Assembly (NCBI RefSeq): GCF_001194135.2
Contig: NC_068981.1
Span: 88,002,978-88,044,899 of the forward strand
Source of the DNA: Octopus bimaculoides
Taxonomy: Eukaryota
Length of the DNA: 41,922 bases
Direction: 5' to 3'
The notes under the pieces are model-generated. The model was not told where the DNA came from and did no database searches. It saw nothing but the letters and a program-made list of their open reading frames with translations. Shown piece after piece: positions 1 to 30,600 of the stretch; within the stretch, counting starts at the first letter, position 1, and each line of letters begins with the position of its first letter. The translations under genes were made by a program, and so were the position numbers.

Positions 1-79
1 AAACGGATGGCGATATCTATGGCACACATAGAACAAAAAACCGGAGGGAAAAGCGTAAACAAAACAAGTCTTTAGTTAA

Positions 80-142
80 TTGGATACGAATCGTTTCATG
101 GTTAAGTGAATGAAAATTTCACTATTCCAATCTTCAGCCCAA
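80..142 (-). ncRNA. candidate minimal type I hammerhead ribozyme in a CpG-rich small element (about 1-271, abutting (TA)n)
   Basis: minus strand: ttggg CTGAAGA t-tgg..agtgaa..ttcact..cca-t GAAA cga-t-tcg TA tccaa. Intact core, 5-bp stem I (ttggg/tccaa), extended stem II with a U-U first pair, 3-bp stem III with a 1-nt loop, GUA cleavage triplet. Folded by eye. Confidence 0.55.
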
Positions 143-268
143 ATATTCTGATAAATTTGAAAGTGTCTCTAAAAAAAATTCACGGTAATTTTTGGCCATG
201 CGACACCAAAAATCAACGATAAGAAAGGCACTTACGAATTCATCGGCTAGTGAGTTCAGGCATCTCAC

Positions 269-271
<3 letters not shown>

Positions 272-302
<31 letters not shown>
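272..302. repeat. (TA)n microsatellite
   Basis: direct reading. Confidence 0.95.
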
Positions 303-680: not shown

Positions 681-863
681 TAATGACATTGATAACATTA
701 ATGAGAACGATACTGGAGTTGATTCAATCACTAAATTCTCTCCCTCACAAAATTGTTTTGGATAATATGGTTAAAATGTCCTACACAGTTGTGCCACAGG
801 TTAAAAATCAAAAGATTCCTAGTGATATCTGTATATATATATATACATAGTAAAAATACTTAC

Positions 864-968: not shown

Positions 969-3900
969 CTACAAAGAAAAGCAGAACAATTACTTTGAAG
1001 GAGGTTGAGTTTAAGTGAGAACATGAATGAAATATATCTTTAAAAAACTCCTTCAATTAACAAAGCACCCAAACAATAAAATAAGTCGCAAAAATTTCAA
1101 TATTTAAAGATATTATGTCTGTGAGATTAAGTTACGGACTACTGACTAATCATCTGCCCAAATTTTACTATAGCTGTTATGTAATGCAAAGCTTACAACT
1201 GATTTCTTTGGTTTTCCTATTCTGCTCTTACTTCACAGCTGAATGGTTAAGTGCTGAGAATAATATATCAAGTCATCCCATAAGTTCTGTCCGATTTTAC
1301 CTTTTTTAAAATTGAATGAAATTTAATAGTATTTTAGAATGTCTAATGGAATTAAAAATTATTTTTATGCATTTGTGTACATTGAAACTAATTAAATATT
1401 ATTTCACAGAATAATACAATTAAAATTTCTTTGATTAAAACCCTTTCTAACATGGAAGTATACAAAGAGCATTTAAGGCACATAATGCTTTATGAGTACA
1501 AAAAAGGAAACTCTGCAAACAAAGCGACTCGAAACATACACTCAGTTTATGGGAAAGAATGCTTGAATGAAAGAACTTGAAGAAGCTGGTTTGCAAAATT
1601 CAGAAGTGGAGATTTCAGCCTTGAAGATGAAGATCGAACAGGAAGTCCAGTTGAGTTTGATGATAAGCTCCTTGAGGCATTACTTGAAGAAAATCCTGCA
1701 TTATCAGTTGAAGAATTGGCAATAAAGCTTAGTTCAAACCATACAACTGTTCATTGTCATCTTCAACAACTTGGAAAGGTTCCTAAACTTGGAAAATGGG
1801 TGCCTCATGAATTGTCCGAAAGCAACTGCAAATCCCAAGTTGACATCCGCCCTTCTCTCCAATCTCGCAAACTCATTTCATCCTTTTTGAATAGACTTGT
1901 GACTGGTGATGAAAAATGAATCTTCTATCGAAATGTTAAACGTCGTAAACAGTGTCTTGGTAAAAGGGAAAACGCTCAACCACAACGGAAAAATGGTTCT
2001 TCTCTCTAGCTGGTTGGATTGCAAAGGAGTAATTCACTTTGAATTCTTACCACCTAATGCAACAATCAATGCTCAAGTCTACTGTCAGCAATTAGAGCGT
2101 TTGAACCAGCTTTGAAGAAAAAAAGACCAGCTTTAGTAAATCGAAAAGGTGTGATGCTTCATCAGGACAATGCGTGACTCCACACTGCAAAGATCACATC
2201 ACAGAAGATCGAAGAGCTTGGTTGGGAAAAAATTCCTCATCCACCTTATTCTCTCGACCTTGCTTCTTCAGACTACCATTTGTTTCGTAGTTTACAGAAT
2301 CATTTGGGGGACATAACTTTCGCAAGCCAGGGGGAGGTCGAAACTGACATTTCAGAGTTTTTCGCTTTGAAACAGAAAGAGTTTTACATTGATGGGATTA
2401 AAAAGCTTGTAAATAGATGGAAGGAAGTCATAGATAATCAGGAAAAGTACATTAATGATTAAATTTCAATTAAATATAACATTTGATCACTTGTTTTCTT
2501 TATTCAAAATTCGGACAGAACTTATGGGATGACCTGATACAATTTGAGGTCAATTGGTCTAACAAAAATCTAACCTTGTATGCTAGCACAGAAAAATAGA
2601 TGTGAAACAACAAAAAATATATATACATAATGCAATAATATTAGGTATTTAAGAAAAAAAAGAGAAATTTGAAGCAAGGTTATTAATCATCCAACTCACT
2701 TTGTGTAGAAGCAAGCTATTTTCTCATCATCTCCATGGACAACAATATCATTATAATCCTTTCCATAACCTGCAGATTAAAATAAATTTGGATCTAATCT
2801 GAGCAACTTAATATTCATTGAATTTATTGTAAAACAATTGTCAAAAAACATAGCAAAAAAAAAGAAAAGAAAGTTTAGGAGATAATTGTAGAGTTTTCAT
2901 TTAATCAGAGGCAATGTCTTTCTGAGTCAATTGATTTGTCTCTTTCAAAGAGTATTGTCTAACTTTTTCTAACTGTTTATTTAACCTGATGAAGTCAGTT
3001 TAGTTGATACATAGAAATTTTTAAGGCAGATAAGAGTTTCAGAGAATTAGGAAGGATTAGGAGAAGATTGGAGCATTATTTGTAAATGAGACAATCATAT
3101 CAGGAGTGATAGAGCTTGCTAATCAAACCAAATAAATGTATAGTTCTTTGAAATACTTTGCCAATTTTCTTTTTAATCAAAAATCAGAAAACTTTATGCA
3201 TTTAATAAAAATCGAGGTTATTTGTATATGTAGTGAACTGATAAATTTTACATAGATTTGATACAAAACGGTTTGGTACTTTGGAAAGTTATACAATTAA
3301 CCAAATTATGCAATTATCTGTTTTGCAATAAGTGGAATAGTGTGTGTATATATATAATATATAGCTATAGTTAAAGTTAAGAATGCAAATGTTCAATTCT
3401 GTTTCACTCTATAGTGCTCATTATAATTATTATTGTTATTCATTTAGCTATCTATTTAGCAGTATGTTATAGGAAAGTTAAGAAATCCAATTGTTCAACT
3501 CTTATAGCCCGGAATTTATGATAAATGTTCTTAAACTTGCTTTAAAATATTCCCAATTTAACATAAACACACTGTAATTTTTCTTTCACTTCACATGTAA
3601 AGTAGATGGGACGATATTAAACAGAGATGTTACATTCATATTAGATAGAAATTTTCATTAATCTTATGAAACTCCAAAAGACAAACCTGCATAGCGGATA
3701 CTTTTACCAAACATCATCGTCCAAAAACAGGGCACACTTCTGATTTTGATATTCTTTCCCAGCATGTTAAGTGCTGCATTCTTTCCTACAAAAATTTCAA
3801 AGAAATATCTAACTTGAAGCAGAATATGATAGATTTAGAATATCAGATATAGTATAAAATACAGAACACATACTAGCTATTCCTAATAGAATGTACTTCA

Positions 3901-6900
3901 CTTCTGACCTGTCAGAGATAGCTAAATAGGTAACTGAAATTATCCTTTTATACAATATTGTTGTCTTAATTTGTTTATGCTTTTGTATTAGGTGAAACTG
4001 TATTGAGGTAGATTTTTCCATAGTCAGATGTTATTCCTATCACCAAACTACACTGGTTTCTAAATATGGTGATATTCAGTCTTTTAAGTAACAACAGCTA
4101 GAACATGCTTTTGTGGAGGACTGTAAAAAACTGACAATGCATGCACAATGGCTTTCATTTACAATCAATGTACACATATCAAGAGAAGGGGAATACATAC
4201 AGATATAACGTGTAGCCTTCAATTGCAAGTATGACCTGGTAGCCTTTCACTAATTGCTATAGGTGTTAATGTGAGTAGATATAGAGACTGTCTCATCTTG
4301 ACTCACTCTTCACTCAGCAGAACATTGAGAGTGTGACAGATGGAAGGAGTGACAGCTGTACCAATAGTTCGGTGGTACTTATTTTCAGCTGAGTAAACTG
4401 AAGCAATGTGAAATGAGTGTCTTGCTCAAGGACACAATGTATTAGCTGTTCCAGGAACCAAACTCACTACCTTATGATCATGAGCCCAACATTCTAACTA
4501 CGAGATCGTGCATTGTCAAACAATCCCCTGCCTCCCTTCCATCAACCACTCTTTCACAATCTCATGAACTCACCCACTCACTCTCTCCAATCTCTGGCCC
4601 ACTCACCATCATTACCATCTTCTCTGTTTCATCACTCTTCTCTCTTGAGGCAGCATGATTCCCCTCCAATACAAGACTCTTTTTTCTTCTCTCTTACTTT
4701 CCCCCACTCCAGTTGAGAGCAACCTCTAAACTTGAATGACATGTCACTACAAACATTAAATCTCACTCTCACTGAGGCCCCTGGCTTAGCAAAGGCTGCA
4801 TCACAAAGATTGATCTGTTTCTTTAGGGACAGGAAATATTTCAATCCCCAACATCTATTAATCCTTTACGTAGCTCAGGTGAAACCCACAATGAAATACT
4901 GCTTCTACTCATACTGGCATCTTAGACTACATCTGTAAAAAGGTCATGCAACTGACAGCTTCAAAGTCACTCACCAACATACTCGAGTCTCTGCTTCACA
5001 GATTTGTCATATATATATATCTATCTCTCTTTCTCACTTTCTGTCATTTCTACTGATGGCACAATTCTGAATTGACCATAAACTGATTGAATTTATGATC
5101 AATTTAATCGATTTTAAAATTGACTGAAGAACTTGTTACAAAAGTAACAAGGACTTACCTGGGAACTTGTGTAACAAGTTCTGAGCAAAGACACTATAAG
5201 TTGTTTTTGTATCGACCAGTTTATGTGAACCAGTACTCTATAATTAGCCCTTATAACATTAGGTCAATATATCAGATATAATAAGATAGCCAAAACATTA
5301 CAGGGCAGTATATTAGTCTAAAAATGCAACCCACTTCTATTGTTTTCTGACCAAATAAGCTTAATTTCAATGTTCACTTTTCTATGCTTGCATGGGTTGG
5401 ATGGGTATTTTTTATTGAAGTAGATTTACTATGGTCAAATGTCCTTCCTAGCACCAACTTTTAAGGTAATGTTAGAAATGAATGACACAGTTAGTATGAC
5501 AATGTCAATCACTCTATGACTGTCATGCAATGCCAATACAAAGACACACACACATACACACAGTGTTTTCTTTAAGTTTCCATCTACCAAATCCCATTGA
5601 CAAAGATTTGGTTATTCTGGGGTTATAATAGGCACTTGCCCAAAGTGTCACACAATGGCATTGAACCTGAAACATTGTGGTTGGGAAGCAAACTTCTTAA
5701 CCACATAGTTATACCTGCAACTCTGTGTAGTTAAACAATGCCATTGTGCTAAAAGAGATAAGAAGGACTTACCTTGAGCATGAGCCATCTGCCAATGTTG
5801 CACATTGGAACCATTGTTAGATCTCAGAAACAATGGAAACTCAGTGATGTCTCCAGCAGCATAGATTCCTTCTACATTGGTTTGCATGTACTGAAAAATG
5901 AGAAGGAAAAATGTTAGTATTTTACAGACTTTGTTTTCTTTGAAGAACTGGACATTACAAGTTATAGTAATGCAAATGTGTAGTTATTGTTCCTCCACTA
6001 CAATAATAATAACAAGGATAATCTTTTCTGGTATAGGCAGAGGGGCTGAAATTTTTGTGGGAGGGGCTAGTCAATTTCATTAACCATAGTGGTCAATTGG
6101 TTCTTATTTTATCAACCCCATTCCCAAAGGATGAAAGGTGAAGTTGACTTCAGTGGAATTTGAACTCTGAACATAAAGCCAAAAGAAATTCTAAGCATTT
6201 TTCCTGGTTTGCCAACAATTCTGCCATGTCACCATCATAATAATTGTAATAATAATGACGACGACGACGACGACAACAACAACGAGGACTCAGCACAAAC
6301 CTCTGCCAAGGCAACACCAACGTCTTCTCAACGATTAGCCAGAGATGATTTTTAAAATGAGAATATCTGAAATAAACTCAACTGCTCTCACAAATGAGAA
6401 TACTAAAAATGAACCCGGCCACACTCAAAAGTTAAGTAAAAGAACAGGAAAAATAATCCAGAATTCTGGTCTAGTACCAGATTGATCCCAAAATCTAATC
6501 AGTTTGTGCCAGTCACGAGGCCAAACATCCCTGAAAGTTTCATCTGAACCCATCCAGTGGTTCTTGAGATATTTGTCCACAGACAAACAAACACAACTGA
6601 AAACAATACCTCCACCTTTGCTAAGGTGGAGGTAATAATCCTTTTTACTATAGGTACAAGGCCTGAAATTTGTGGGAGGGTGATAGTAGATTACATCAAC
6701 ACCAGTGCATAACTGGTACTTAGTTTATTGACCCCCAAAAGGATGAAAAGCAAAGTCAACTTTGGCGGAATTTGAACTCCTAATGTAAAGNNNNNNNNNN
6801 GGAGGTAATAATCCTTTTTACTATAGGTACAAGGCCTGAAATTTGTGGGAGGGTGATAGTAGATTACATCAACACCAGTGCATAACTGGTACTTAGTTTA

Positions 6901-12900: not shown

Positions 12901-15900
12901 AAGTGTGGAATGGGTGGGGCACTTTTTAAAAATTTCTTTTGAAAATACAACTATAATATGCTTGAATCAATTGGGCTAAACAAGCAATCTTTAGTCTCAA
13001 ACAATTATGATGAAATTAAGTGAAAAAGGAACAAAGGAAGAGAGAGAGAAAAAAAAAACGAAAAGATGTGTGTGTATATAATTCTTAGTATTATGCTGTA
13101 AGGAGGAAATGTACATTAAACTCTCTGTTCATTTCTTCCTTACAGTGTAAAAATAAATACTACGAAATTTTATTCTTTCATCAGGATATTTTTTTGCTGG
13201 ATTACTACATTGATGCAAACTATAATCTAGGTTATCAGATTACACTCATTTATTATTATTATTGAGTGAAAGAGCAGTGCATGCCATCAAAGTGACACTG
13301 GGGTACAAATATACAAAGCCCAATATACCCATCACAACTACTCGTCTGATAAGGGAACATCAGGCACATGCATCACAACCATATGTGCATGACTTGGTGA
13401 TTTCATATCAAGATTAGCAGTGTATGACCTTGCAGGTGGGGCCCAGTTAGATTTTTTTTCAGGACAAGTAGCTCATCCAGCTTAAAAGGTCCTTGAATAA
13501 GATTTGTTTAAAGATGTTAAAATGAAACACCCATGTTTCCAGAGGTGTTTTATTCAAACCCAAAAGAATTTCTCTCAACACAAGGCTATGAAGCTCCCCC
13601 ACTACTTCTGCTCATGATCAGAGATGCACATATCATCAGTCACCAAGGGACATGCTCAACAGTTATGGTCAAACAGCTGACAAGCAAATCTGTGGTATTG
13701 AGCAGAATATTTCCTGTAGTCCATCTCTTATACTAAAACAAAACATGTACATGATAACACTTTCAATCAGTTAAGATCAGAAGCCATGAGAGCCAGTGCC
13801 TGGTACTGCATCATATTATTATGGCAGCAAGCAAGCACGATTGTTACCTTGCCAGACAAAATAATAAGCAACATTTCTTCTGGCTTTACGTTCTGAGTTG
13901 AAATGCTGCTGTGGTTGACTTTGCCTTGCAGAGTCAATAAAATAAGTACCAGTTGAACACTGGGTCAATGTAATCGACTTACCCCTTACCCTAAAATTGC
14001 TGGCCTTGTGCCAAAATTTGAAGCCATTATTATTAAGTGGGCAAAACTATTAGCTGTTACACAGAAATGCTTTGTAGTACTTCTTGCGGCTCTTTACATT
14101 CTGGCTTCAAATTCCATAAGGTTGACTTTGCCTTTCATCCTTTCAGGGTCAATAAAATAAATACCAGTGGAGTTGTGGGGTCGATGTAATCAATTAACCT
14201 CCACTCCACAAAATTTCAGGCCTTGTGCCTATAGTAGAAAGAATTATTATAGTGCATCTATGTCTGTTGAACTTAGAGAACATGTTGCTCAACAGAATGC
14301 TTAAGTCTCTGACAACACTTCAAATTTCAGGTGCCAATCTTTGATTGCTACTTAATAACCTATGGATATATGGCTTCAGGAAGGTGAACTTAACATTTAG
14401 ACCATACATCCTGATTACAGGGCTAGTGGAACCAATGCTCATATAAAACATTTAAAAAAATGTGGTTTCTATGTAAAACTACTGGAGTAGATTACACTTA
14501 AAATTAATCCCCTGTAACAATGTTTGATCACTGATTTCATTTTATCTACAAAATCTATTGAGTGCATTTAATCCACCATCCTCCAATAGTCCGTTGCTAG
14601 GATTCATTTCTCTTTCTTTCTCTGATTCATCAATAATGCTTTATTAACCACTTCTGTTGGGGTGGTAAAAAAGTTTGTAGCGTATTTTAAGTAAAATTTA
14701 TTAGCAATATTTAGATAGTTGTACATACCTTTACTCAACCACATATTTCCTATTTTGTTCCACTACCTTTCACAATATTTGAGGCAGCTTCATGATCTCA
14801 TCCTTCCAGAAAATTCTGGGTCATGAACTGGTATAAGTAGTTTTTATACCCTTTTAAAGAATCGAAGTTCTTTCTATTAAGAGAATTTTGCAGGGATTGA
14901 AATAAATGAAAATCTAAAAGCGCAAGGTCAGGTGGGTGGGTTAGGACATCCCACACAAGCTGTACCAATTTCTGCCTAGTCGGCAAAGAAATGTGCAGTT
15001 TAGCATTGTTCTGATGTCTGGTTGCAGTCTAGCATTGTCCAGTTGCCCAATTCTGGATGTTTTTCATCAATCACCTCCTTTAATCGGTCTAATTGGGAAC
15101 AATAATAGTTTGAATTTAACATCTGATTTTGTGGAAATAATACACAATGCCCTTCTAGTCCCACCAGATGTAGAGCATCACCTTCTTCAGAAACAAACCA
15201 GCTTTTGTTGAGATTGAAGGTGGTTCATTTTGTTTTCCCCAAGACCTTTTTTCATGTAATGTAAATAATCCAATTCACATGAGATATATGGAGAATCTCC
15301 ATGTTGTCTTGCGTAGTCTGACATGGATTATTTTTATTAAAGTCCTGACTGTAAGCCTGTTGGAACATTCACAATCTTCCAGATCAAAATTTTCAGTTCT
15401 AAACCAAGCGAACCACTTACAAACAGTACTTTCAGCTATGACACCGTCTTTGTAAACAGCACATATTTTCTTTGTTATTTGTGCAGCATTTTTGCCTTTC
15501 CGGAAATAAAAGAGCATTAACTGACGAAAATGTATTTCATTTCTTTCATTTTCAATTTCATAAGAACAGTAGAAGTTAATAATCCACACAAAATTCAAAT
15601 AAAAAAATGTGTTGAGATCTCCTCTTTCAGAAAATATATATATGTCATATGTTTCTGTCATGTGATAAAACAGATCACATGATTAAACATCACCAATTGA
15701 AAAACGCTACAAACTTTTTTACCAACCCAATAATTCCATGTATTCATATATTAGTTGCACATCATTAATCAAGCCAAAGCTGGATCCTCTATATAGTCCT
15801 TCAAAATGCAAGAAATAGTAGCCAGATTTCCCTCAAAATGCACCTACCAAATTAACAAAGAAAGAATACATTGGATAATGTAGCATTAAATACACTAAGC

Positions 15901-18900
15901 CTAATGAACAAGACAAAGTAGTCAAGATGAGAATGCTAAACCAGAGATTCCTGGCTAAACAACAACTTTAAATTTCCCATTATCTTTCATATACTTTCTG
16001 ATAACTGCTATTATGAATAGTTCTAGTTAGGTATTGACTTCTTTCTTCAATGAAAATGTTCACCATATTTTCTAACATCTTTATAATCAAGTAGCAATTA
16101 AGGACTCTGAAATGATAGGAAGAAGAATCACACCAAACCCTGCTTTATATGAGGTAATCTCAAATTAAAGGTTTATTTTTAATACTGTTTATTAATAAAC
16201 TTCACACTCTACCTTACTATAGAACAGTGTCTTGCATCTTATATCACTAAAACAAAACCTGTTCTTTAGACTTTTTGGTTACCACTTATTTCCATTCAAA
16301 ACTTCCAAAAGAATTAACACTACTCCCAATTCATACTATCTCATTCATTAATTTCAATAACAATGTTACCATTAAAAGCTCTCTTTCATTCATGAAATTA
16401 TATTGTATAATTTTTACCCACAAAAAAGACCACAACATCAAGTCTTCTAGTTTCATATTTATAACATTTCCTCTCATTTCTAACAGAGAGGTTTCTTATT
16501 TGAATAATCCATCAGTTTATGACTTCTTAGATCTGAAAAAGTTACATGTGAAACAACCACATCATTAACATGTTCTTGTTAAAGGTCTTCGGTTGTTCAG
16601 AGAATTGGAGTTACCCACATAATCCACTGGAAAATACAAGCTAGACATTGCAAGACAATGAAGTTGTATGAGGACACAACATAATTTGCATGTGTGCACA
16701 TACACACACAAATATATAAGAAAAAAGAAGCATGAAGAAAGAAACTAGTGTTTACCAATAAAAGATGATCCAATAATTACAACATTCTTCCTTTTGCTCT
16801 CTGTTGCAATATAATTAGCTTCACTTGGAGTTCTTAGGAAACAAACATTCTGCAAATCATTTCCAGGAATCTCTAATGATCTTGGACTGAAGGGAAATCA
16901 AAAGTGAGCAAGCATTAAATTATCTGATAATTTTATATATGACAATAGTCAAAGAAAAGTGACTACATACCTTCTAATAGTTCAGGTCAGACTGGTACTA
17001 AATAACTAATGAAGATACACACAGGTGCATATATGTCCTGTATTACAGAAATACGATTGCATACATTTACAAATGATTACAAAAGTTCTGACACACTGAA
17101 TCCTGACAATATCTTTAATAAAGAATGCTAAAATCTCTTCTTTAGTAACTTAACTGGAATTGTCTTCTGTCTTTTACCTGTTTCAGTCATTAAACTGTGG
17201 CCATGCTGGGGCACCACCTTGAAGACTTTTTAGTCTAAGTGACCCCACTATTTATTTTTTTTTAAAACTTGGTACTTATTTCATTGGTCTCCTTTTTGCT
17301 GAACCACTAAGTTACAGGGATATAAACAAATCAATACCACTTGTCAAGCAGTGGTGAGGAACAAACACAAAGACACAATATGACGGGTCTCTTTCAATTT
17401 CTGTCTGCCAAATCCTAGAACCATGTGTCTAGTAAGAAGCTTGCTTCTTACTAGACAACTATATCTATGTATTGTATGTCATTTTTTTAGGATGTCATCT
17501 TGGGTCTTTACTAGACTAGCTTTCAATTGCTTTCTCTAGGTAAGCATCGATTACGAGATAGCTAGAAAGCAGAGGAGGGGAGAGGGAATTATTTTTGACT
17601 TTATATACAGTATCTAATGTAATTTCTTTTGTTTTTTTGCTACTAGAACATTGGTGAACAAGCTTTCAACATGAGTTTCTTCTAAAAATCTTTAGAAATT
17701 CATCAGATTCTTCAATTTTATGTGTATTGAGAGGTCACAGCTCCACATTGAGAGATCACAGCTTCAGTACTGTAGACATGTGATTAGAATGTTGTAGAAA
17801 AGAATTGCAAGATGGATTCTTCAAACTGAGCCAACTGGCGGGAAACTTAGAAGTAGGCCAAAAGTGAGATGTTTGGATAATATCCAGTCTCAGTTGATCA
17901 TGCTTGGGAATCCAGTAAGAAAGTCTAAAGATGGTTGCTTCTGATAGGATCTTAAGGCAGAAATGTGAGAGGATTCCATCCCACTGACTCACCCAAGAAT
18001 AGAAGATGAATGGATAGGTGGCATAAAAGTGACAAAAGTAACATGATTTGCCTCAGTCATAATTATAAATAGAGATCCAGCAAGATAATAATCAACTAAT
18101 CAAAAATCAAACTAAACAAACTAATTAAATGTGATAAATTAACAAACAGGAACTGCTTATTTTTCCATCATCAAAAGGGAATACCCTGTATCAAGTACAT
18201 GTACACACACACATACATACAGCATGCTGAAAGTGCACAAACAAAGCAATTTCCTCCAACCTATATCATCACAAATTTATATGCGTCTACAAATAAAATC
18301 ACCAAACAATTGGATAGCATTATCAAAAATTATGCCTTTTACCTTTTACTTGTTTAAGTCACTGGACTATGGCCATGCTGGGGCATCACCTTGAAGTGTT
18401 TTAGTTGAATAAATTGACACCAGTACTTACACTTTTTTTTTTTTTTCAAGTCTGGTACTTATTCTATCGGTCTCTTTTGCCAAACTGCTAGGTTGCCACT
18501 TGGCAAGTGGTGGAGGAGTGATAAACACACACACAAAGACACACACATGCATATATATATACATATATATATATATAAATTCAATAATAGGACGAATTCT
18601 TTTACAAGAATTTATCAAGTAGCTAGCATGAAAAAACCTCATAAGGGAAAAAATCCATCATTTATTCCCGAAATATATATTTATATTTATATAAGGGCAT
18701 TACTATACGATAACGCCTCACGCCATGAGGGACTCTAAGGTCAGACTACTATAAAAAGCACATTTTTNNNNNNNNNNNNNNNNNNNNNNNNNNNNNNNNN
18801 NNNNNNNNNNNNNNNNNNNNNNNNNNNNNNNNNNNNNNNNNNNNNNNNNNNNNNNNNNNNNNNNNNNNNNNNNNNNNNNNNNNNNNNNNNNNNNNNNNNN

Positions 18901-21900
18901 NNNNNNNNNNNNNNNNNNNNNNNNNNNNNNNNNNNNNNNNNNNNNNNNNNNNNNNNNNNNNNNNNNNNNNNNNNNNNNNNNNNNNNNNNNNNNNNNNNNN
19001 NNNNNNNNNNNNNNNNNNNNNNNNNNNNNNNNNNNNNNNNNNNNNNNNNNNNNNNNNNNNNNNNNNNNNNNNNNNNNNNNNNNNNNNNNNNNNNNNNNNN
19101 NNNNNNNNNNNNNNNNNNNNATTGACACCAGTACTTACACTTTTTTTTTTTTTTCAAGTCTGGTACTTATTCTATCGGTCTCTTTTGCCAAACTGCTAGG
19201 TTGCCACTTGGCAAGTGGTGGAGGAGTGATAAACACACACACAAAGACACACACATGCATATATATATACATATATATATATATAAAACTGTCTGATGAA
19301 CAGGAATATGAAACTCTGAGTAACAGTTTTTGTGATATTTTTGCTGCTTTTTAATAATATATATATATTTGGGAGAATTTACGAAAAAAACAACAATAGA
19401 CGAGGACAGGTGGTGTAAACAACAAAAGGATGTATTAGTTTAACGCTTGGGAATAGAGAACGTTTCGAGCTACGCTCTTCAACAGAAAGAAATAAGGAGA
19501 AAAATAGATAGATAAGGCTTCCACACAGTTTCTGAATACCAAATTCATGCATATGACAATTAGTCAATCAGGGTTGTAGTAGAAGACACTTGCTCAAAGT
19601 GCCATACAGTGTTATTGAATGTGAAACCACTTGGTTGCAAAGTGAGCTTCTTAACCACACAATTAATATGCAGTCATTAGAAGAAACAAAAAGTGTAGGC
19701 ACCACCTCAACTTTATGTAAAAAAGTTTGTTCACGAAAGTTTCAGTAGCAAATCATACTGGATAATATATTTATTGTTTCTGCCATGATATTAGATTTTA
19801 TGGTATCAAATAATATCATATCTGTTTCTGCCTTTATTGCTGCTAGTGATATTAAGTAATGTATAGTATTGTGGGGAAGTTATTATACACCATTAGGTAT
19901 ATACCGCTTCCGCACATTAAATTTCTTGAAGAAACAACGGAATGCAGATTCTGAACAACACAACAATATTTATTTACAGTGGAATTCGGCTCACGCTTGG
20001 AGGGAATTCGGTAGCTCGTCGCCATTGGTTACTGAGACGCCTTCTGAATGAAGTTCGTGGTTATTTGTGAAGCTCTGGTGCTGAGATGTGAGAGAGCTCT
20101 GTTGGACGTCTTGGCTCGACGGAGATCAGTGAACGAAGAGGCTGAGAAGAGGCGCGAAAGCTTGGGTGTCGAACTCTACGCATGCGCATGAGACTCTTCC
20201 TGAACTAGTCCCTGCACATGCGTGGATAAAACTCCGGACATTGAACATATAACAGTCGTCTGCTATAAAAGCGTCACTACAGTATCATCCAAAATAAAGC
20301 TAGTTGTGATACCAGCCAATTCATTGAAGAAAGTATTAGAGATATGTACATGGCCACAATAGGGAACAAAGCAGTACCAAAGCACAAACAAATTGCATGC
20401 ATAACATATTTGGTGGATATACCCCTTGTGATGGATACTGAGAACAAGCATGACCAATATGATATACAAACTAGATTGTAAAAGCAAAAGTTGTAAACTT
20501 CCTAACTCCTACTGTTGCACTGGTTATACAAATACAACATTCTCTCATAATCTCATTGTAATGAAAAACAATTGTAGCACTATACCATAACAAATTAAAA
20601 TAGGCAGGAAAACATTAGTGGACAATATATCCATACTATAGTGTACAGAATTCCTCATAAAAACAGATGGTTACTAATGGAAACATTACTCATAAGACAG
20701 CACAATGCTACAATAAACACATAAAACACAAATACATTATAAACAAAATAAACAGGAGACTAATGATGTATAAATCTAATGGTTAAATTTCAAATTGTCA
20801 ATGTCTCCACAAATTTGGATGATAAACTCTATAGAAATCCCATTTACCTTCCATAAAAGAGGCAATTACACAAACCAACAACTTCACATCTTGATGATGA
20901 GGCTATTAAAGTTTAGAAATGTTGATGAATTCAGCTCCTTAATTGTTTTAAATTAAGATCAAGGGACTTAAACAATAATATTAAAATGTATTAATAAAAA
21001 AGTTAAAACTTGAACATGGTTATATTTTTAGTATAATATACAAGTATCTATCTATTTGTGTGCATGTATTACATGTATATATTTTATAACACAAAGGCAG
21101 TTTCTCAGAATCCTTCAACAGCCACAATGGCATCAAACAAGGTTGTGTCTTGGCCCACACACTATTTGGAGTTTCCCTTGCTGTGCTGTTGAAACAGACT
21201 TTTGTCAATGCAACAGTGGGGATCTATCTGTATACTAGATCAAGTGACAGGCACTTCAATCTGTCCCACCCCAAACCCAAGACAAAAATATATTACTTAT
21301 ACATAAAGCCTATAATAAGGTTGTTTGGCTGGTACAAACGAACACCATGTATCCAGCATAGCATATGGACGACTGTTCATCGCTATTTCCCTATGTAAGT
21401 GGAGGGAAATAGCGATGAACAGTCGTCTATATGCTATGCTGGATACATGGTGTTCGTTTGGTATGTTGATTCACTGTTTATTTCTATTTTTCTGGACCAT
21501 ATTATACTGACAAGTAGAAGTTGTATAATACTACAATAACTACGAAATCATGATCTATAATTTAGTCCGTTTTTAAGGGGTTGGCTTTGAGAGTTGCATT
21601 TCCTCGCATTCGGTAAAAATGTGCTTTTTATAGTAGTCTGACCTTAGAGTCCCTCATGAGATAAAGAGGGGCCTGTGACTATCTTTNNNNNNNNNNCGAT
21701 GAACAGTCGTCTATATGCTATGCTGGATACATGGTGTTCGTTTGGTATGTTGATTCACTGTTTATTTCTATTTTTCTGGACCATATTATACTGACAAGTA
21801 GAAGTTGTATAATACTACAATAACTACGAAATCATGATCTATAATTTAGTCCGTTTTTAAGGGGTTGGCTTTGAGAGTTGCATTTCCTCGCATTCGGTAA

Positions 21901-24900
21901 AAATGTGCTTTTTATAGTAGTCTGACCTTAGAGTCCCTCATGAGATAAAGAGGGGCCTGTGACTATCTTTTGGATCTTTCTCTAAGATAAAAAGCCTTAC
22001 CCCCACCTTTGAATTTTGAAAAGACTTTTACTTCCAAAATCTGTTTTGCCTTCTCAAATTACTCAGCAGCAGCTGCACACGCACACACACACGTGTCACT
22101 AAATCTGATAATAATAAAATAAGGAACTGACTGTGACTTACTTGCCTCCTGTGGCTAATAACAGCTTGGTGTAACTTATCTCTGTCCCATCTTTAAATAT
22201 TGCTATTTTCTTTTCGCTGTCAATATTAACAAGCTGAATAATAAAACAAACAAAATACAGTTCCTAATAAGAAAAGTGCATATGGATAAAGATTTCTTAA
22301 TTGAAGGTTAACTGAGTCATCATTGTTGTCGTCACTGTTTAATGTCCACTTTTCCAAACTTGCATGGGTCGGATGGAATTCATTGAGGCAGATTTTCTAT
22401 AGCTGGATGCTCTTCCTGTCATCAATGTTTTACCTTTTTCTAAGCAAAGTAATATTTCCCCATAACTATACATGGAAGACTGAGAACAAGCAATATTGCT
22501 TGTATGATGGTGATGCTCACCTTCTCACGTCAAGATAACGGTACACACAAACATATACAAATATATGTATATTGGGCTTCTTCCAGTTTCCATCTACCAA
22601 ATCTACTTCCAAGTCATAATTGGTGTCTATAAGGGTTAATGACAAGAAGGGCATCTGTTCATAAAACACTCCCTCAGAAAAACCATCCAAACTATGGCAG
22701 TATGGAAAAGTGGATGTAAAATGATAATAACAAGAGCACTCAGAGAGTGCGAAACTCTGCCAAGGCAACACCAATGTCCTCTCAACAATTAACCAGAGAT
22801 GATTTTTAAAATGAGAATATCTGAAATAAACTCGACTGCTCTCACAAACAAGAATACTAAAAATGAACCTGACTGCTCTCAAAATCTAATCAGTTCGTGC
22901 CAGTCACGAGGCCAAATATCCCTGAAAGTTTCATCTGAATCCATTCAGCGGTTCTTGAGATATCTTGTTCATGGACAAACAAACAAACAAATGGGTGCAC
23001 AGAGCTTTGTATATTTGTATCCCAGTGTCACTTTGATGGCATGCACTGCTTTCTCGTTCAATAATAATGATTTCTTTATTAACCACAAGGGTTTACACAA
23101 ATAAAAATATTATGGACAGCACAGGACAAAACAAACAATGTGTATGTGTGTGTGTTGTGAGGGTTTTGTGTGTAAACAAGACTAACAAAATTAAAGGAAA
23201 AAGAAATTAAAAATGTGTAATCCTCAATAGGGAGGAGACATTTGAGGGCTGCTCATGGAAAATCCCCATAAAAAAAATCATGGGTACCCTGACTTTTGGG
23301 GCAGGTGCTTTTTCCTTTCCTTTTTTTTCCAATTATAGGCATATGCTCAGGGCAAGCCCATTCACTTGTACCATTCTCGTCACTTTCATCCACCTTTCAG
23401 CACACTGGTTAGAAGACAACACTTCCCTCTCTACCCTTATTTTCCTTTTCAAGTGAAACTTAAAGTTCATCAGGGATTGGCCAAAGAGAAAAGTGTTTGT
23501 CGTCATCCCCTTCAATCTTGTCCACCAGGCATATAAAAACAGTCTTTTCTTTCCAGTTAAAGGAAGGTGGTGGGAAGATCTTCACGATGGATTCAGTTGA
23601 CAGCCATATCTGTCCCACAAGCGACAGCAAGTATTCATCATAAACCCATAAGTCAACAATGTTCGGGCACTGGACAAGAGCATGCAGGACTGTCTCGTTG
23701 TCCTGCACGCATCTTGGACATGCTCGGCTGACCGTACTTCTGTGCCTGTAAAGTTTATCTTAAACAGGCAAAGCTCCCCAGTAGCACTGCGCGGCCAGAG
23801 ATTTTTGGAAATTATTCATTAGTCCTGGCCCGAAAATTCTCTGGAAAAGAGCAACTAGCTGACCTTCAATGCCCAACATCTCCCCGTTGCACTTTTCCTC
23901 CACTAATCCTCTATAAAAAGTTGAAGTGGACATTCCACCTATTGCACTGTCCGATTGGCTGAGGGCTGTGAGTGCTTGAAGACATTCCACTTTCCAAATG
24001 TTCTCCCTCGGTCTCTGTTTTGCTCAGGACTGTAGTTCCATCAAGGAAACTAGCTGTGGAAATACATGTCTGGCAAACGGTGACCACACCTGTTCACCAT
24101 CTAGGAAGCACTGAAGATGTAGCTTCAGCGCATGTCTGCACATCATCAACCATGGCATGCTCAGGCCACCACACAGTGGGTGTTGACAGCAGATAGACCG
24201 CCTGACCATCGGGATGCATCCTTTCCACAAAAAGCTGAAGAGAATACGTTCAAGCATAATCAGATGGTGACCAGGACAAGGCATGACGGTCAAGCAATAG
24301 TAGATAATGGATGTGATGTACACGTTAGCCACCTCTCTCCAACCTTTCAGGGATAACTTTCTCTCGGCCCATTTCTGGGCGAGAGTAGTCACCCTGTTCA
24401 TTACTTCATCTTAGTCTTTGTCCATCTGGAGGTCCAGACCAAACCAGACCCTGAGCAATTTAACCAGTCCGTCTGTCCAGCACCCAATGATGCAGTTGGA
24501 CAGCATGGACCTGCTTCTCCAGGTGCCAAGCCACAAGCCCACTGATTTTTCCTGGTTAATTATCACTCCTGAAATCGCCTCATAGTCCCTGAGTGTAGTG
24601 CCAATCATTTCTATGTGTTTATGATCCGACACCACTGTGGTGATGTCATCGGCATATGCCGACACACATCTCCCACATCCTAGGTCATGTGGGATGCCAC
24701 TCAAAACCTCCAGTTTGTGCAGTAGTGGCTCAAAAGTCAGTATGTACAAGTGTGTGTGTTTTGTGTCGTTTGAATGATTTGTATGTGTGCATGTAAGGAG
24801 ACTGTGGGTGTGACAAAATCGTCTGTTGTAATGTTTGTGTGTGTTATGTACTTCATGAATTCATTGTTTTTTTGTGCTTATTGCCATGTAGTTTGTAATG

Positions 24901-27428
24901 TTAGTGTCTTTAATTTGTTTGTTGTTGTGGTTGTGTGTGTGGGATAGCTTGTGTTTCAGGTGTTAGAGGTGGTGGTGTCGATGCAGTGTTTGTTTTGAGT
25001 GTATTTTTGTTGTTTTGATTTTTTCTTTCTACTTCTTGTGTGGATAAGGCTTGTTGTTGTTTGTCCATATGCTTGTTTTTCCTTCTGTCTCTTTTCCATT
25101 TTTTTTGTTTTTATCTTTCATGCAGTCTGACTCTTCACCTGTGATGTCCATCTGCTCTGCATCAGGAAGTGGAGTATCTTCGGATGCTGAGAAGTGTTTG
25201 GGGAAACTCAGTGTTGGTGGTGCCATGGCTGAATCTGATGATGGTGATGGTGCTGCTGCTGTTGTTGCCGGAGTTTTGGTGGCCGTTGTTGGTGTAGGGA
25301 AGAGAGGTGCTAGTCTCTCATTTTCCTTCAGTCTAGGGCAGCGGGTTTTTAAATGGTTAGTTGAAAAGCAGGCGTGGCACTTTGCTTTCCTTCGAACTAC
25401 CCTGACTGGAATTAATCTGTCTCCAGAAAGAACGATATGGTCCGGGATGAGATCCACATTCTTTTGTGTTGTTTGAATAAGGAGTTCCATGGTCATCCTA
25501 GACCAGTTCTCCTTTTTGGTCTGATAGGCTTCGAAGATTTTCAAGTTTTCCTCGATGTCTACTGTCACTGCAGTAATTAGCCAAGGAATGGTTATTTCTG
25601 GCAGCACCTGTTGAATTATTATTTTGGCCAGTCTCTGACCACAGTAGAAAGAAACTAACAACAGCTTCTCGCTTATGAGGGATGAGAGTGATGTTTGGCT
25701 TCTTCCTTGGTGTGGAATTTAATGTCCACCATTCTATAGGCCCTTCCTCACTGTATATATTCCTTTAAATTCCAGATGGAACCTAAAGCTTTTTGTATTT
25801 GAGCCTCTGTGACTCTTTGCACACTCCTTGATTTTAACCTGATTGTATGGTACGTCCCTGTATTGTGAATTGTATCCTGGATTGTCTCAGGTGGGGTATT
25901 CAACTTTACAGCTATTCTGTCTCTCTCGACTAGCTGTCTAGCATATTTAAGTTCCTCTTCAGAGAATTGTATTCTCTGAAGAGATGATTTGGTTACTCCA
26001 GCAAAAGAAGGTTTTGAAGAGCTGTTCCAAGCCGTTGCACCAGTTTGTGTCTCAGCTCCTTCATTACCGTTGTCATTGTTGCTTTTGTTGTGGTCGTTGA
26101 TGGTGCTGCTGATGTTGTTGCTGTTGTTGTTACTTGTACTGAACTTGATCGTTGCTTTGCTCATGAAAGGGCTCTCGTCTACGTTTTCGAAATTGTTATA
26201 TTCATTTCGAAACATGTCAAAAATAGAGCTTTTGCTTTTCTGAAGATCTTCTAAGAGATCCTTCTTGAAAACATTGGCTGTGTTAGCCTTTTTGTTTTTT
26301 TTTTCAACAAAAATACTGCCACTTTCTGTTGTGTTTTTCCAGCCCCAAGTTGCTTTACATGCAGTCTCTCTCATTGATGTCTTGTGACACTCCTCACTCC
26401 CCACCTCTCACATATAAGCCTCACCATGTTTTGTATCAGAAAGCATCATGGGGAATATAAAGGAAATTCGAATAGAGCACCCAGTAGAGCTGTTACAAAA
26501 GGTTTGCTTCCTTGGCACGGCCAGAATAATCAGGAAAGCATTAGATAGCCGAAAAGAACGGCAAATTTTGGCACAAGGCCAACAGTTTTGAGGAGGGGGT
26601 TAGTCGATTACATTGACCCCAGTGCTAGACTTGTACTATTTTACTGATCCTGAAAGGATGAAAGGCAAAGTCAATCTTGGCAGAATTTGAACTCAGAATG
26701 TGAAGACAGATGAAATGTTGCTAAACATTTTGCCTGGTGTGCTAACAATTCTACCAGCTCACTGTCTTTAATAACAACAGCAACAACAATAATAGTGGAG
26801 GTGATGGTTATTATGATGGTGATGGCATAATTATAAAAAGCTAAGTTGGTTTTAAAAAGGGATGTTGACTAAAGAATTTGCTTCTGGCAAGAATCATGTT
26901 CTGTGTTCTTACTGTTAAAAGACAATGGAAATGATATTTTTTTTCTTTTAACAAATTTTTAAATATTTTCGTGGGTTAAATGAATGTTTGAATTTAGAAA
27001 TTTTACCGTGATTATGGGTACACTTATTCTTCAGACATCTTTCTTCAATGGGATCTTCTACTGTAGAGTAAAAATAAACTATCTATTTTTCACTTACATA
27101 GATTGAGTGTTAGGGTGAAATTTAACCATTTAGCACTTAAACCAGCCATATCCGGCCAAAATATTCTACCTGTTTTATGTTCAAACTGACCAGATCTGGC
27201 CTTCTTATGCCAACCCTATGATATCATTCTAAAAATTAATAGTTACCTCATCAACATCTCAAACCTACAACATAATGCATGATTAATTCAAATCAATGTG
27301 AATAAACAAACATAATATTTGACAGAGTAATCTGAATGCTAAAGGGTTAAATTGAGTAATGAGGGCTGCGCGAGAATAAACAAAATACTTGAAGCAATAT
27401 ATGGACATGATGAAATGAAATAATAATT

Positions 27429-27475
<47 letters not shown>

Positions 27476-27603
27476 NNNNNNNNNNNNNNNNNNNNNNNNN
27501 NNNNNNNNNNNNNNNNNNNNNNNNNNNNNNNNNNNNNNNNNNNNNNNNNNNNNNNNNNNNNNNNNNNNNNNNNNNNNNNNNNNNNNNNNNNNNNNNNNNN
27601 NNN

Positions 27604-27671
<68 letters not shown>

Positions 27672-30600
27672 TGTTATAGTACAGTGATAAGAAAACTGCA
27701 TTTCTTGAAGCACAAGATGAGTGTCATTAATTTTCTGGAGTGATATTCAATAGGTGTCAACCATCACAACACATTATATACACACTTCAGAATCAATACA
27801 TTATTATTTAAATCAATGTCGAAACTTTTAACAGTTTACAAATTAAAATTCAGAAACTTTCAGACCACTCACCTTTGATAATTTCGGTCTGTCATAAGGA
27901 ATACACTCTTCTTTTGAAGCTAGTATAATTTTACCTGTAAAACCTTCTTGCCTCAGAGTTTCAGCACAAATCAAAGAAGCTGGACCTTAAATAAATAAAC
28001 ATACATATACATGTATACACAAATATAAACAGTAACCAGGGGAACATTCTTAACTCAATAGATTTATAAATATATTTAGTAATACAAAATCAGGAGAGGT
28101 AGGAGATAAATATGCAAAAATGCATGTAATTAATCAATTAACTCATCAATAAAGATGGATAGCTATATAAAGAAAGAAAGAGATCAATGCATGGAGAGGG
28201 ACTGAGAGAGAGAGATAAAGAGAAAGGAGGTTCTATGTGATCCTTGGACACATTAAATCTAGCAGCTAAAACTTAAAGATGGTAGAATACAATTTGAAGA
28301 AGCTTTATTTGCAAGTTCTGGGTGAAGGGGTCATGTAGAGGTTTTTTTAGTGGTGTGATGATGTTTTAACAATGTTGGGTAGATGTGATTGTAGATGTTT
28401 AGGGGTTAGAGTGTGCTGTGAGCAAAAACTGGGTCGCTCACATGATTTTTCATTTTTAAGTGTTTTTGATTGGTTAGGTCAGTGATCTGTGTGTAACAGG
28501 TAATAATGCGAAATATGCTGTTTTGTATTCTTTGTTGATTATAATTTGTTCAGGAGATGATGTTGGAGAACCAGGCAAAACTGACAAAATTCACAATGGA
28601 TCTAATGCATTGTTTGTACACTTACATCATCCTAAAATGGTTGAATATGAGACAACTGTAATATGCAAAAGGACAGGATGGTCACATTTAGATTGCCAGT
28701 TGAACAATGAAAATTCAATACATAGAAATGCATATTGACAGAAGTAGATGAAGGGAGAGAAAGGATCAACAACTACCAAAGAGAGACAAGAAATGAAGAC
28801 CCAAAAGTCTCAAAATATAGGTTGAATGAGATGAGAGACTAAGACTGACCTCCACCAACTAAGAGGTTAACCTCATTTGTTGCACTGGAATATTTCACCA
28901 TTGGTTTCACTCTCCGGAATTCTTTCAGTTTATCTTGGGGAACAGTCAATTTTACTATAGCATCCTCAACTGTCACCTGAAATATAAAACATAGTAAACT
29001 CACATTTAACACATCTTTGGATAGAAAGGTTCAGGAATTAACATGGCTTATACATTGATGCCAATATTGATAAACACAATGTGTGTGTGTGTGTGTATAT
29101 ACACACACACACACACACACACACAGTATATACAGATGTAACAATCACATGTCTAAAACAACAAATCAAAGAAGTTTGGCAGCCATTGTTCTATGGTAAC
29201 TGGCTGCCATTTCAATGGTTTCAAATTCTGGCACAAGGCCAACAATATTGGGAGGAGGATAGTTGATTACATCAACCCCAGTGTTCAACTGGTACTTATT
29301 TTATTGACCCTGAAAGGATGAAAGGCAAAGTTGAGATCAGCGGAATTTTAACTCAGACTGTATAGATGAATGAAATGCCGCTAAGCATTTTGCCTGGCAT
29401 GCTAACAATTCTGCCAGCTTGCTACCTTCATTTCAACAGTAACTTTCCACTTTGATTGTCTTTATGCAACTGCCTCTAAATAAAGTGAAGACCTGACCTT
29501 GAATAGCATGGTAATATACACCAGAATACAATACATACGAGGGGGTGCTGAAAAGTTCCTGGCATTAAGGGTATTGCAAAAGGCCTGGTTGGAGGCCCAA
29601 CCTTCTGAGTTCTTTTACAGGGCTTAGAAAAACTGAAAGACTGCTGCAAAAAGTATGTGGATCTGAGAGGGGAATATGTTGAAAAAAATCATAATTAACT
29701 GACCCTCTATTTTCTTTTATCCAAAGAACATGTCAGCACTCCTTCATATATTATAGAGCTGCTAGAAATAGTCAGATTCTCTTAAATCCCACCCCTACCG
29801 TTTTAAGAGAGGAAAGACACATTAGACAGTATAGTCGTAGATAATTCTAAAATGACAGGGTAGTCAAGGACAGAATGCATTTGATGATGGGTTTTTTCAA
29901 TCAGGGCTAACATGGGACTGAGTGACAACAATGTAACCAAGAATAAAAGAAAGAAAAGTTCTAATGTTAAGAATAAAAGGAAAGGGTTAAACCAGATCAG
30001 TGGTTCTCAACCAGGGTCCACATCAGATGCTCATGCATCTTCTTCTCCAGATACGTTGACGACATACTTATCATCACGTCCTCCAGGAATGAGGCCATTA
30101 ACATACACCGGGCCTTCAATAACACCGACATAAACATCAAATTCGAGATTGAACACCCAGATGAATCCGGAACCTTCTCTCTACTCAACTTTCAACTCAA
30201 GATCACAGAGGAAGGCTCCATATTTACCAAATTCTACAGAAAAGTTGCTAATAGAAAACTTTTTGTCCACTACTAATCAGCCTTACCCACCAGAGCCAAA
30301 GCTGCATACGTGAGAAACAAGATTGCACATATAAACAACAATTGCAGCAACGTGACCAACAAAGTCGTCAGCACCAAACTCTGAATGGCTACCCACCATC
30401 TTTAGCTAAACAACAGCACCTAAAGAACATCAAGGTCAATAAACCCTGGACGAACCATCATACTTACAAGTCCAACACCTGCTTCCTAAAGCTACCACAC
30501 CTTGACGACAGAACTACTGCAGTGATACAACACACAGTCTGCAGGGAAGGACTCTACATACAGATAGTGCACACTGGCCCTTCCCTGAAAAAAACTCCGT

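Follow-up and report, generated by a model that had tools for sequence, protein, structure and literature searches.

Does the minus strand at positions 142-80 of this Octopus bimaculoides DNA carry a hammerhead ribozyme, and, if so, where did it come from and what would it do to the transcript that contains it? The window, that is, the whole stretch of 41,922 nucleotides analysed here, had been described in an initial annotation as containing a hammerhead-like motif with an intact core on the transcript strand of AIFM3. Read directly from the sequence, the motif is UUGGG-CUGAAGA-(33-nt helix II)-GAAA-CGAUUCG-UA-UCCAA. Its parts are as follows.

138-142, minus strand: 5' strand of helix I, UUGGG, which pairs with 84-80 (G.U, G-C, G-C, U-A, U-A)
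131-137, minus strand: core box C3-A9, CUGAAGA, from the sequence reading and a descriptor match
98-130, minus strand: helix II, 33 nt, with U.U at 10.1/11.1, 3 bp, a 3x3 internal loop, 6 bp and a 7-nt loop
95-97, minus strand: core G12-A13-A14 (GAA), from the sequence reading
86-94, minus strand: helix III, quasi-palindromic ACGAUUCGU, made of A15.1-C-G, an AUU loop and C-G-U16.1
85, minus strand: A17, with the GUA triplet at 87-85 and the predicted scissile bond at 85|84
80-84, minus strand: 3' strand of helix I, UCCAA, which pairs with UUGGG

The conserved core is complete: CUGAAGA is at 137-131, GAA at 97-95, A94 faces U86, and position 17 is A85, an H residue and not G. The helices are arranged as in type I, with helix I open and helices II and III closed as hairpins, and they contain 5 bp, 3+6 bp, and 3 bp, respectively. 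The G.U pair of the 5-bp helix I adjoins the core. The letters of helix II between CUGAAGA and GAAA (minus strand 130-98) are UUGGAAUAGUGAAAUUUUCAUUCACUUAACCAU, and its elements follow in the order U.U, U-A, G-C, G-C, the 3x3 internal loop, AGUGAA/UUCACU and the 7-nt loop. In helix III, A15.1 (94) pairs with U16.1 (86), and the three pairs A-U, C-G, and G-C enclose the AUU loop. The sequence and coordinates, the full core, the 5-bp stem I, the quasi-palindromic stem III, the GUA triplet, and the cut site at 85|84 are all as the initial annotation had given them, and so is the U-U first pair of stem II, at 130/98. The latter means that a Watson-Crick pair is absent at 10.1-11.1. This pair is G-C in nearly all natural hammerheads. 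No loop-loop tertiary contacts between helices I and II are evident in the motif. Two copies of the quasi-palindromic helix III could form an intermolecular helix of 9 bp with one U.U.

The energy of the hammerhead-constrained fold is -8.9 kcal/mol, versus -11.1 kcal/mol for the unconstrained fold of the 71-nt RNA, which leaves a gap of 2.2 kcal/mol. The minimum-energy fold preserves helix I and, in helix II, both the 3-bp base and the distal hairpin of 6 bp, but it gives up helix III for an alternative helix in which part of the CUGA box is paired. With folding z-scores of -0.58 for 71 nt and -1.28 for 270 nt, the RNA does not stand out. The latter value also gives no support to a rod-like, viroid-type structure of the longer RNA. 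The U.U at the base of helix II, the interruption of this helix, the 3-bp helix III, and the lack of evident tertiary contacts together lead to the expectation of slow cleavage or none.

Recognition by covariance models, which the initial annotation had proposed as a check, did not come about. The hammerhead families of Rfam (RF00163, RF00008, and RF02275-7) gave no match at the gathering score in the window, and no match at E <= 10 in 1-400 or in the 91-nt piece 66-156. A control bears on this result: a textbook mini-hammerhead of a Penelope-like element (PLE), at 304-342 of the PLE contig L006, was missed by Rfam as well. This means that the Rfam models cannot decide on PLE-type variants, of which even a genuine-looking example escapes them, and that the null result does not exclude a hammerhead of the PLE type.

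The position of the motif relative to the host gene can be fixed by comparison with two congeners. Exons of the AIFM3 orthologue lie on the minus strand of the window; their best protein matches are AIFM3 of O. sinensis and O. vulgaris, with about 95% identity within the exons, and the orthologous segments share about 90-93% nucleotide identity with those of the two species. The annotated genes of both species identify the exon that ends at 864 as the last but one. It is followed by a splice donor.

858-863, minus strand: GTAAGT splice donor of the last AIFM3 intron, identical to the donor in the O. sinensis locus (L001)

In the O. sinensis and O. vulgaris proteins (P0001 and P0121), the sequence "...KNEVV" is continued by NKSNKWLFN*, which is encoded by a terminal mini-exon at 84756-84785 of L001, 1.19 kb downstream. 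This terminal exon was not found in 1-1100 of the window; therefore, AIFM3 runs off the window start. Because of the conserved GTAAGT donor and the terminal exon of the two congeners, the motif is placed 721 nt into the last intron, in the sense orientation. The distance of about 720 nt past the last identified exon, as first estimated, is thus borne out by the measurement from the exon end at 864. Sense orientation within the last intron, one of the two locations that the initial annotation had offered, also stood, and the other, the 3' UTR, did not, since the exon that encodes NKSNKWLFN* in the proteins of both congeners has been mapped. Neither AATAAA nor ATTAAA occurs on the minus strand of 1-870. 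A placement in the 3' UTR drawn from the missing AATAAA/ATTAAA was dropped in view of the conserved donor and the terminal exon in the two species.

Several other features of the AIFM3 loci should be mentioned. In O. sinensis, an upstream intron contains, at 52231-52368 of L001, a 77.5%-identical copy of the penultimate exon region (window 990-853), which may be a duplicated or alternative AIFM3 exon. Another AIFM3 intron of the same locus gives a full-length match to 5S rRNA at 22005-22123 on the minus strand (Rfam, 91.6 bits); it could be a 5S gene, a 5S pseudogene, or the head of a 5S-derived SINE. The window itself contains N-run assembly gaps at 6791-6800, 18768-19120, 21687-21696, 27476-27603, 35953-35962, and 36760-36769. 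Between 27.8 kb and 16.9 kb, at least one exon that AIFM3 should have could not be located, and it may be hidden in such a gap.

The motif is located in a short segment with a composition of its own, next to a microsatellite.

1-270, no strand assigned: unique CpG-undepleted segment bearing the motif, cut by the window edge, defined by CpG content, absence from the orthologues, and copy and protein searches
272-303, no strand assigned: (AT)16 microsatellite that bounds the segment, from the sequence and repeat searches

The segment contains 11 CpG dinucleotides, with an observed/expected ratio of 1.21 versus 0.28 in the whole window, and its GC content is 37%. Only 1.8% of 270-nt stretches have 11 or more CpG. 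The CpG-rich element anchored on (TA)n of the initial annotation is therefore really there. The remaining CpG-rich patches of the window mostly overlap transposon-like sequences. The second strongly CpG-undepleted patch is at 19846-20385, with an observed/expected ratio of about 1.0 and GC up to 0.51, about 500 nt upstream of a mutated mini-hammerhead (20887-20927) that is described below. The motif is 128 nt from the (AT)16 boundary. The (AT)16 is itself preceded by a unique piece of 117 nt, by a tract rich in TA and CA, and by a SINE at about 431-608. The alignment with O. sinensis and O. vulgaris breaks off at window position 558, and nothing like 1-557 is present in the last AIFM3 introns of these species or anywhere in the whole loci of 95 kb and 74 kb; the motif is accordingly not conserved in the orthologous introns. 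The undepleted CpG, the adjoining (TA)16, and the absence from both orthologous introns suggest a young insertion. On these grounds, segment 1-270 is probably a lineage-specific insertion whose far end is outside the window: the window ends 79 nt past the motif, and the 3' boundary of the segment is not seen within it.

The relatives of this segment were looked for in several ways. Self-BLAST and nhmmer found no second copy of 1-270, either within the window or across some 300 kb of DNA from Octopus and Argonauta. With zero copies in about 300 kb, the bound on the copy number is loose, less than a few tens of thousands. Repeat searches showed no tandem unit or internal repeat within 1-270, and there is no second motif in the window. 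Further copies and tandem units of 1-271, whose presence the initial annotation had made a matter of interest, were thus not found in the window or in the roughly 300 kb of cephalopod DNA. No homologue of the motif was detected in the window, in six cephalopod loci, in metagenome and viral contigs (exact-pattern scans), or in phage and plasmid collections (BLAST). Protein searches with 1-330, covering all open six-frame pieces, found nothing at E <= 10, and a profile of the PLE endonuclease and linker (EN/linker) gave no match to any of the six frames of 1-420. A reading frame that starts with an ATG at 31-29 is still open where the window ends. By eye, the plus-strand frames at 1-110 and 200-270 had suggested the C-terminus and core of a PLE GIY-YIG domain; this candidate was rejected, as the order is wrong, the tblastn E values are 0.1-0.5, and a profile of 155 sequences scores at most 0.7 bits. 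An origin from a tRNA or SINE was also rejected after ARAGORN found nothing. A protein search with a putative TTL exon, aimed at the neighbouring gene in other octopus genomes, gave no candidates.

Penelope-like elements are present in the same gene, and so are mini-hammerheads of the PLE type.

30031-30935, plus strand: remnant of a 5'-truncated, canonical Penelope-like element, antisense to AIFM3, comprising the C-terminal part of the reverse transcriptase and GIY-YIG, from tblastn

The open reading frame at 30342-30959 on the plus strand has 453 relatives at E <= 0.001, of which the long ones consist of RVT_1 followed by a C-terminal GIY-YIG domain; Pfam did not recognise the frame itself. 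No intact hammerhead core is present within 28000-33000. L006 is a related full-length PLE contig, which has TA repeats on its flanks and ends in (TA)n. Its mini-hammerhead at 304-342, UCUU CUGAGGA U GGGAU UUUUU AUCCC GAAA UAU U AAGA, lies about 250 nt inward from the TA repeats at the 5' end, with the ATG a further 100 nt on. A mini-hammerhead of the same architecture, CAUC CUGAUGA U UAGGUU..GUUUA GAAA UGU U GAUG, occurs in intact form within one AIFM3 intron of both O. sinensis (L001 70034-69994, minus strand) and O. vulgaris (L003 49251-49211, minus strand). The orthologue in the window, at 20887-20927 on the plus strand, has C3 changed to U plus two changes in helix II. AIFM3 exons lie between 20887-20927 and the 30-kb PLE remnant, which means that these two are separate insertions. 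The chance expectation of PLE-type mini-hammerheads is 0.007 sites per window. Hammerhead-bearing elements are common in this DNA. A motif as good as the candidate arises by chance far less often than real motifs of hammerhead lineage are to be expected here a priori.

Transposons of other types were also observed in the window. Remnants of a Mariner/Mos1-type transposase are at 1431-2462 (plus strand) and 15275-15661 (minus strand), the latter with an HTH_48 match at E = 3e-18. A retroelement remnant at 24024-26404 on the minus strand has a YADD reverse-transcriptase reading frame with a weak RVT_1 match and two upstream reading frames of 210 and 218 aa that have no Pfam match; this element is probably of the non-LTR type.

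How often a motif like the present one would occur by accident was estimated by descriptors and by folding energy. In a descriptor scan, the motif is the sole site with a full core and three helices in the window, and at the same stringency no other such site is present in about 211 kb of Octopus DNA. The descriptor fitted to the candidate matches a fraction of 0.0007 of first-order Markov windows, and a relaxed descriptor 0.03. A statistic less closely fitted to the candidate was the lowest folding energy that any complete-core site attains under the hammerhead constraint. The observed -8.9 kcal/mol was reached in 1 of 1500 simulated windows, and refinement with 400,000 simulated core contexts gave about 3 x 10^-4 sites this good per 42-kb window. 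This corresponds to about 20 sites of such quality per 2.7-Gb genome. A look-alike with a full core, a 4-bp helix I, and a 1-bp helix III is present at 17656-17710 on the minus strand; it passes the loosest descriptor only and is taken as noise.

In the explanation that we favour, tentatively and at slightly short of an even chance, the motif is a hammerhead copy borne by a retroelement on a young insertion and is a slow or inactive passenger in the AIFM3 pre-mRNA. A Penelope-like or retrozyme-type retroelement would have inserted into the (TA)n tract of the last AIFM3 intron, and segment 1-270 would most likely be a fragment, or the 5' part, of that element. The insertion would have carried along a solitary motif of the type I hammerhead family. 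Owing to its sense orientation, this motif would be transcribed within the AIFM3 pre-mRNA, where the lone monomer might cleave slowly or not at all. It would then be a mobile-element passenger and not a selected regulator of AIFM3. The complete core with three helices, to be expected by chance at only about 3 x 10^-4 per window, points in this direction, as does the comparable placement of the L006 hammerhead, about 250 nt inside its 5' TA boundary against 128 nt in the octopus motif. Against it, no other copy was found in about 300 kb, which leaves neither a family nor covariation in its favour. It should be mentioned that a plus-strand retroposon whose 3' tail is the (TA)16 would explain the boundary equally well; the motif would then be antisense to the element and accidental. 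An accident is also the substance of a rival explanation that has a considerable probability, if one that stays below even: an AT-rich, non-conserved intron happens to contain CUGANGA and GAAA, suitably spaced, between short complementary flanks, with neither ribozyme ancestry nor activity. About 20 sites of equal quality are expected in a 2.7-Gb genome, and the finding stems from a scan of many windows. The absence of a family, of conservation, and of an Rfam match agrees with this, as do the deviation of the most conserved non-core pair (10.1-11.1), the interrupted helix II, and the ordinary thermodynamics; the look-alike at 17710-17656 illustrates that loose descriptors catch noise. However, chance has to account for a probability of only about 3 x 10^-4 per window and for the location of the motif: it sits beside a (TA)n boundary, within the 270-nt stretch of the window found to be least depleted in CpG, and this is the kind of site where hammerhead-bearing retroelements are expected. 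Real PLE-type hammerheads in the same gene also stand against it.

Other explanations assume more activity or more sequence than is seen here. The segment might belong to a non-LTR retrozyme array as one of its units, or to a full PLE as its 5' pseudo-LTR, and continue past position 1, where a second hammerhead would allow dimeric cleavage and the production of linear or circular RNA. The end of the window 79 nt after the motif, without a 3' boundary of the segment, leaves space for this, and so does the ATG frame from 31-29 that runs off the edge. A GC content of 37%, the ACG...CGU stem of helix III resembling that of the mussel retrozyme, and the possible 9-bp intermolecular helix III with one U.U would also fit. 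Nevertheless, no repeated unit occurs within 1-270, the RNA of 270 nt shows no unusual degree of structure (z = -1.28), there are no copies in 300 kb, and vertebrate retrozymes are reported to be depleted from introns (bioRxiv 10.64898/2026.07.22.740005); we regard this explanation as unlikely. The release of a circular RNA, which had been suggested at the outset, finds no basis within the window, where a second copy, a tandem unit, and a family member are all absent. Marginally less likely still is an active sense hammerhead from a recent retroelement insertion that cuts the AIFM3 pre-mRNA before the terminal exon is spliced on. The lowest probability, a very small one, is given to an exapted host ribozyme that cuts the AIFM3 pre-mRNA and thereby controls the use of the terminal exon or the stability of the transcript, in the manner of HH9/HH10 or CLEC2. 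An intact core would suit such a function, and so would a sense position in the last intron, 721 nt from the preceding exon and with a short coding exon still to follow. However, neither O. sinensis nor O. vulgaris has the motif in the orthologous intron, its helices are sub-optimally built and show no stabilising tertiary loops, and the segment looks recently inserted. A selected role in AIFM3 expression is unlikely because the motif is not conserved, and a role in AIFM3 regulation is unsupported.

The consequences differ between these explanations. If the motif is real, as in the favoured one of a retroelement passenger, it would be a transposon-associated type I hammerhead and would document hammerhead-bearing retroelements in octopus. 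It would also show, in nature, a ribozyme that has only recently come to lie in sense orientation within a host intron, and would help to gauge how frequently such insertions perturb genes. If it were active as well, which has only a slim chance, it would be a recently arisen, lineage-specific change in how a cephalopod processes the 3' end of AIFM3, mediated by a ribozyme. If it is a product of chance, it serves as a calibration: a complete core with three helices arises at about 20 accidental sites in a genome of this size.

Among cephalopods, 235 hits of Rfam Hammerhead_1 were counted in the giant squid genome (PMC6962438). This is the only cephalopod figure that a literature search returned, and the search found no report of hammerheads in octopus. 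Two groups of mobile elements offer themselves for comparison. Minimal hammerheads are reported in PLEs (Cervera and de la Pena 2014, PMC4209133; Lunse et al. 2016). PLEs insert into microsatellites, (TA)n in the case of Naiads (PMC8557442). The emergent features of their hammerheads are an extra base after A9 and a highly conserved G10.1-C11.1, together with a large continuous helix II of 5-8 bp and a palindromic 15.2-16.2 with loop 3 (PMC4209133). The octopus motif is like these minimal hammerheads in its helix I, for which 4-5 bp are typical, in a helix II larger than usual, in the weak quasi-palindromic helix III with possible action as a dimer, and in adjoining a (TA)n boundary. Unlike them, it has no G10.1-C11.1, no bulged base can be demonstrated before 10.1, and the run of pairs in helix II is broken. 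In helix III, three true base pairs close a triloop that is not palindromic, and the motif has neither a visible adjacent RT/GIY-YIG reading frame in the window nor a family. The PLE mini-hammerhead consensus of extra base, G10.1-C11.1, continuous helix II, and palindromic helix III therefore does not describe the octopus motif, whose architecture also differs from the PLE-type examples at L006 304-342 and L001 70034-69994. Of the link to PLEs or retrozymes made in the initial annotation, the plausibility is upheld by the undepleted CpG, the (TA)n, the absence in two congeners, and the presence of a PLE and a mini-hammerhead in the gene. The fit is not, in view of the missing G10.1-C11.1 and the interrupted helix II.

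Hammerheads that reside in host genes share another property with the motif. The amniote intronic HH9/HH10 and the discontinuous 3'-UTR hammerheads of rodent CLEC2 are likewise in sense orientation inside a protein-coding transcription unit. However, HH9/HH10 and CLEC2 are conserved across species and fit canonical models, whereas the octopus motif is lineage-specific and unconserved, and its helix II is non-canonical.

The non-LTR retrozymes of metazoans form the second group of mobile elements. They are head-to-tail repeats of 150-450 bp, each bearing a type I hammerhead, whereas the octopus motif was found as a single copy with no visible tandem repeat. Its helix II of 33 nt with a 3x3 internal loop contrasts with theirs of about 4 bp, and it has no recognisable contacts between loops 1 and 2 and no match to Rfam Hammerhead_1. 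On the other hand, the type I topology, the complete core, and the low-GC element are shared with the retrozymes of coral, mussel, and axolotl. The mussel retrozyme hammerhead reads ACGCGCGU at helix III (PMC7229834 supplement), and the octopus motif resembles it in a short helix III that starts A-C-G...C-G-U; the two ribozymes may be compared as GAAACGCGCGUC for mussel and GAAACGAUUCGUA for octopus. The U.U mismatch at the base of helix II is also known from a working ribozyme. Axolotl HHR_Amex2 has U.U at this position, is present in about 60,000 copies, and is active: its monomer is cleaved to 22% within 1 h, and its dimer far more efficiently (Cervera and de la Pena 2020, PMC7229834). The octopus motif resembles the hammerheads of invertebrate retrozymes a little more than those of the PLE class.
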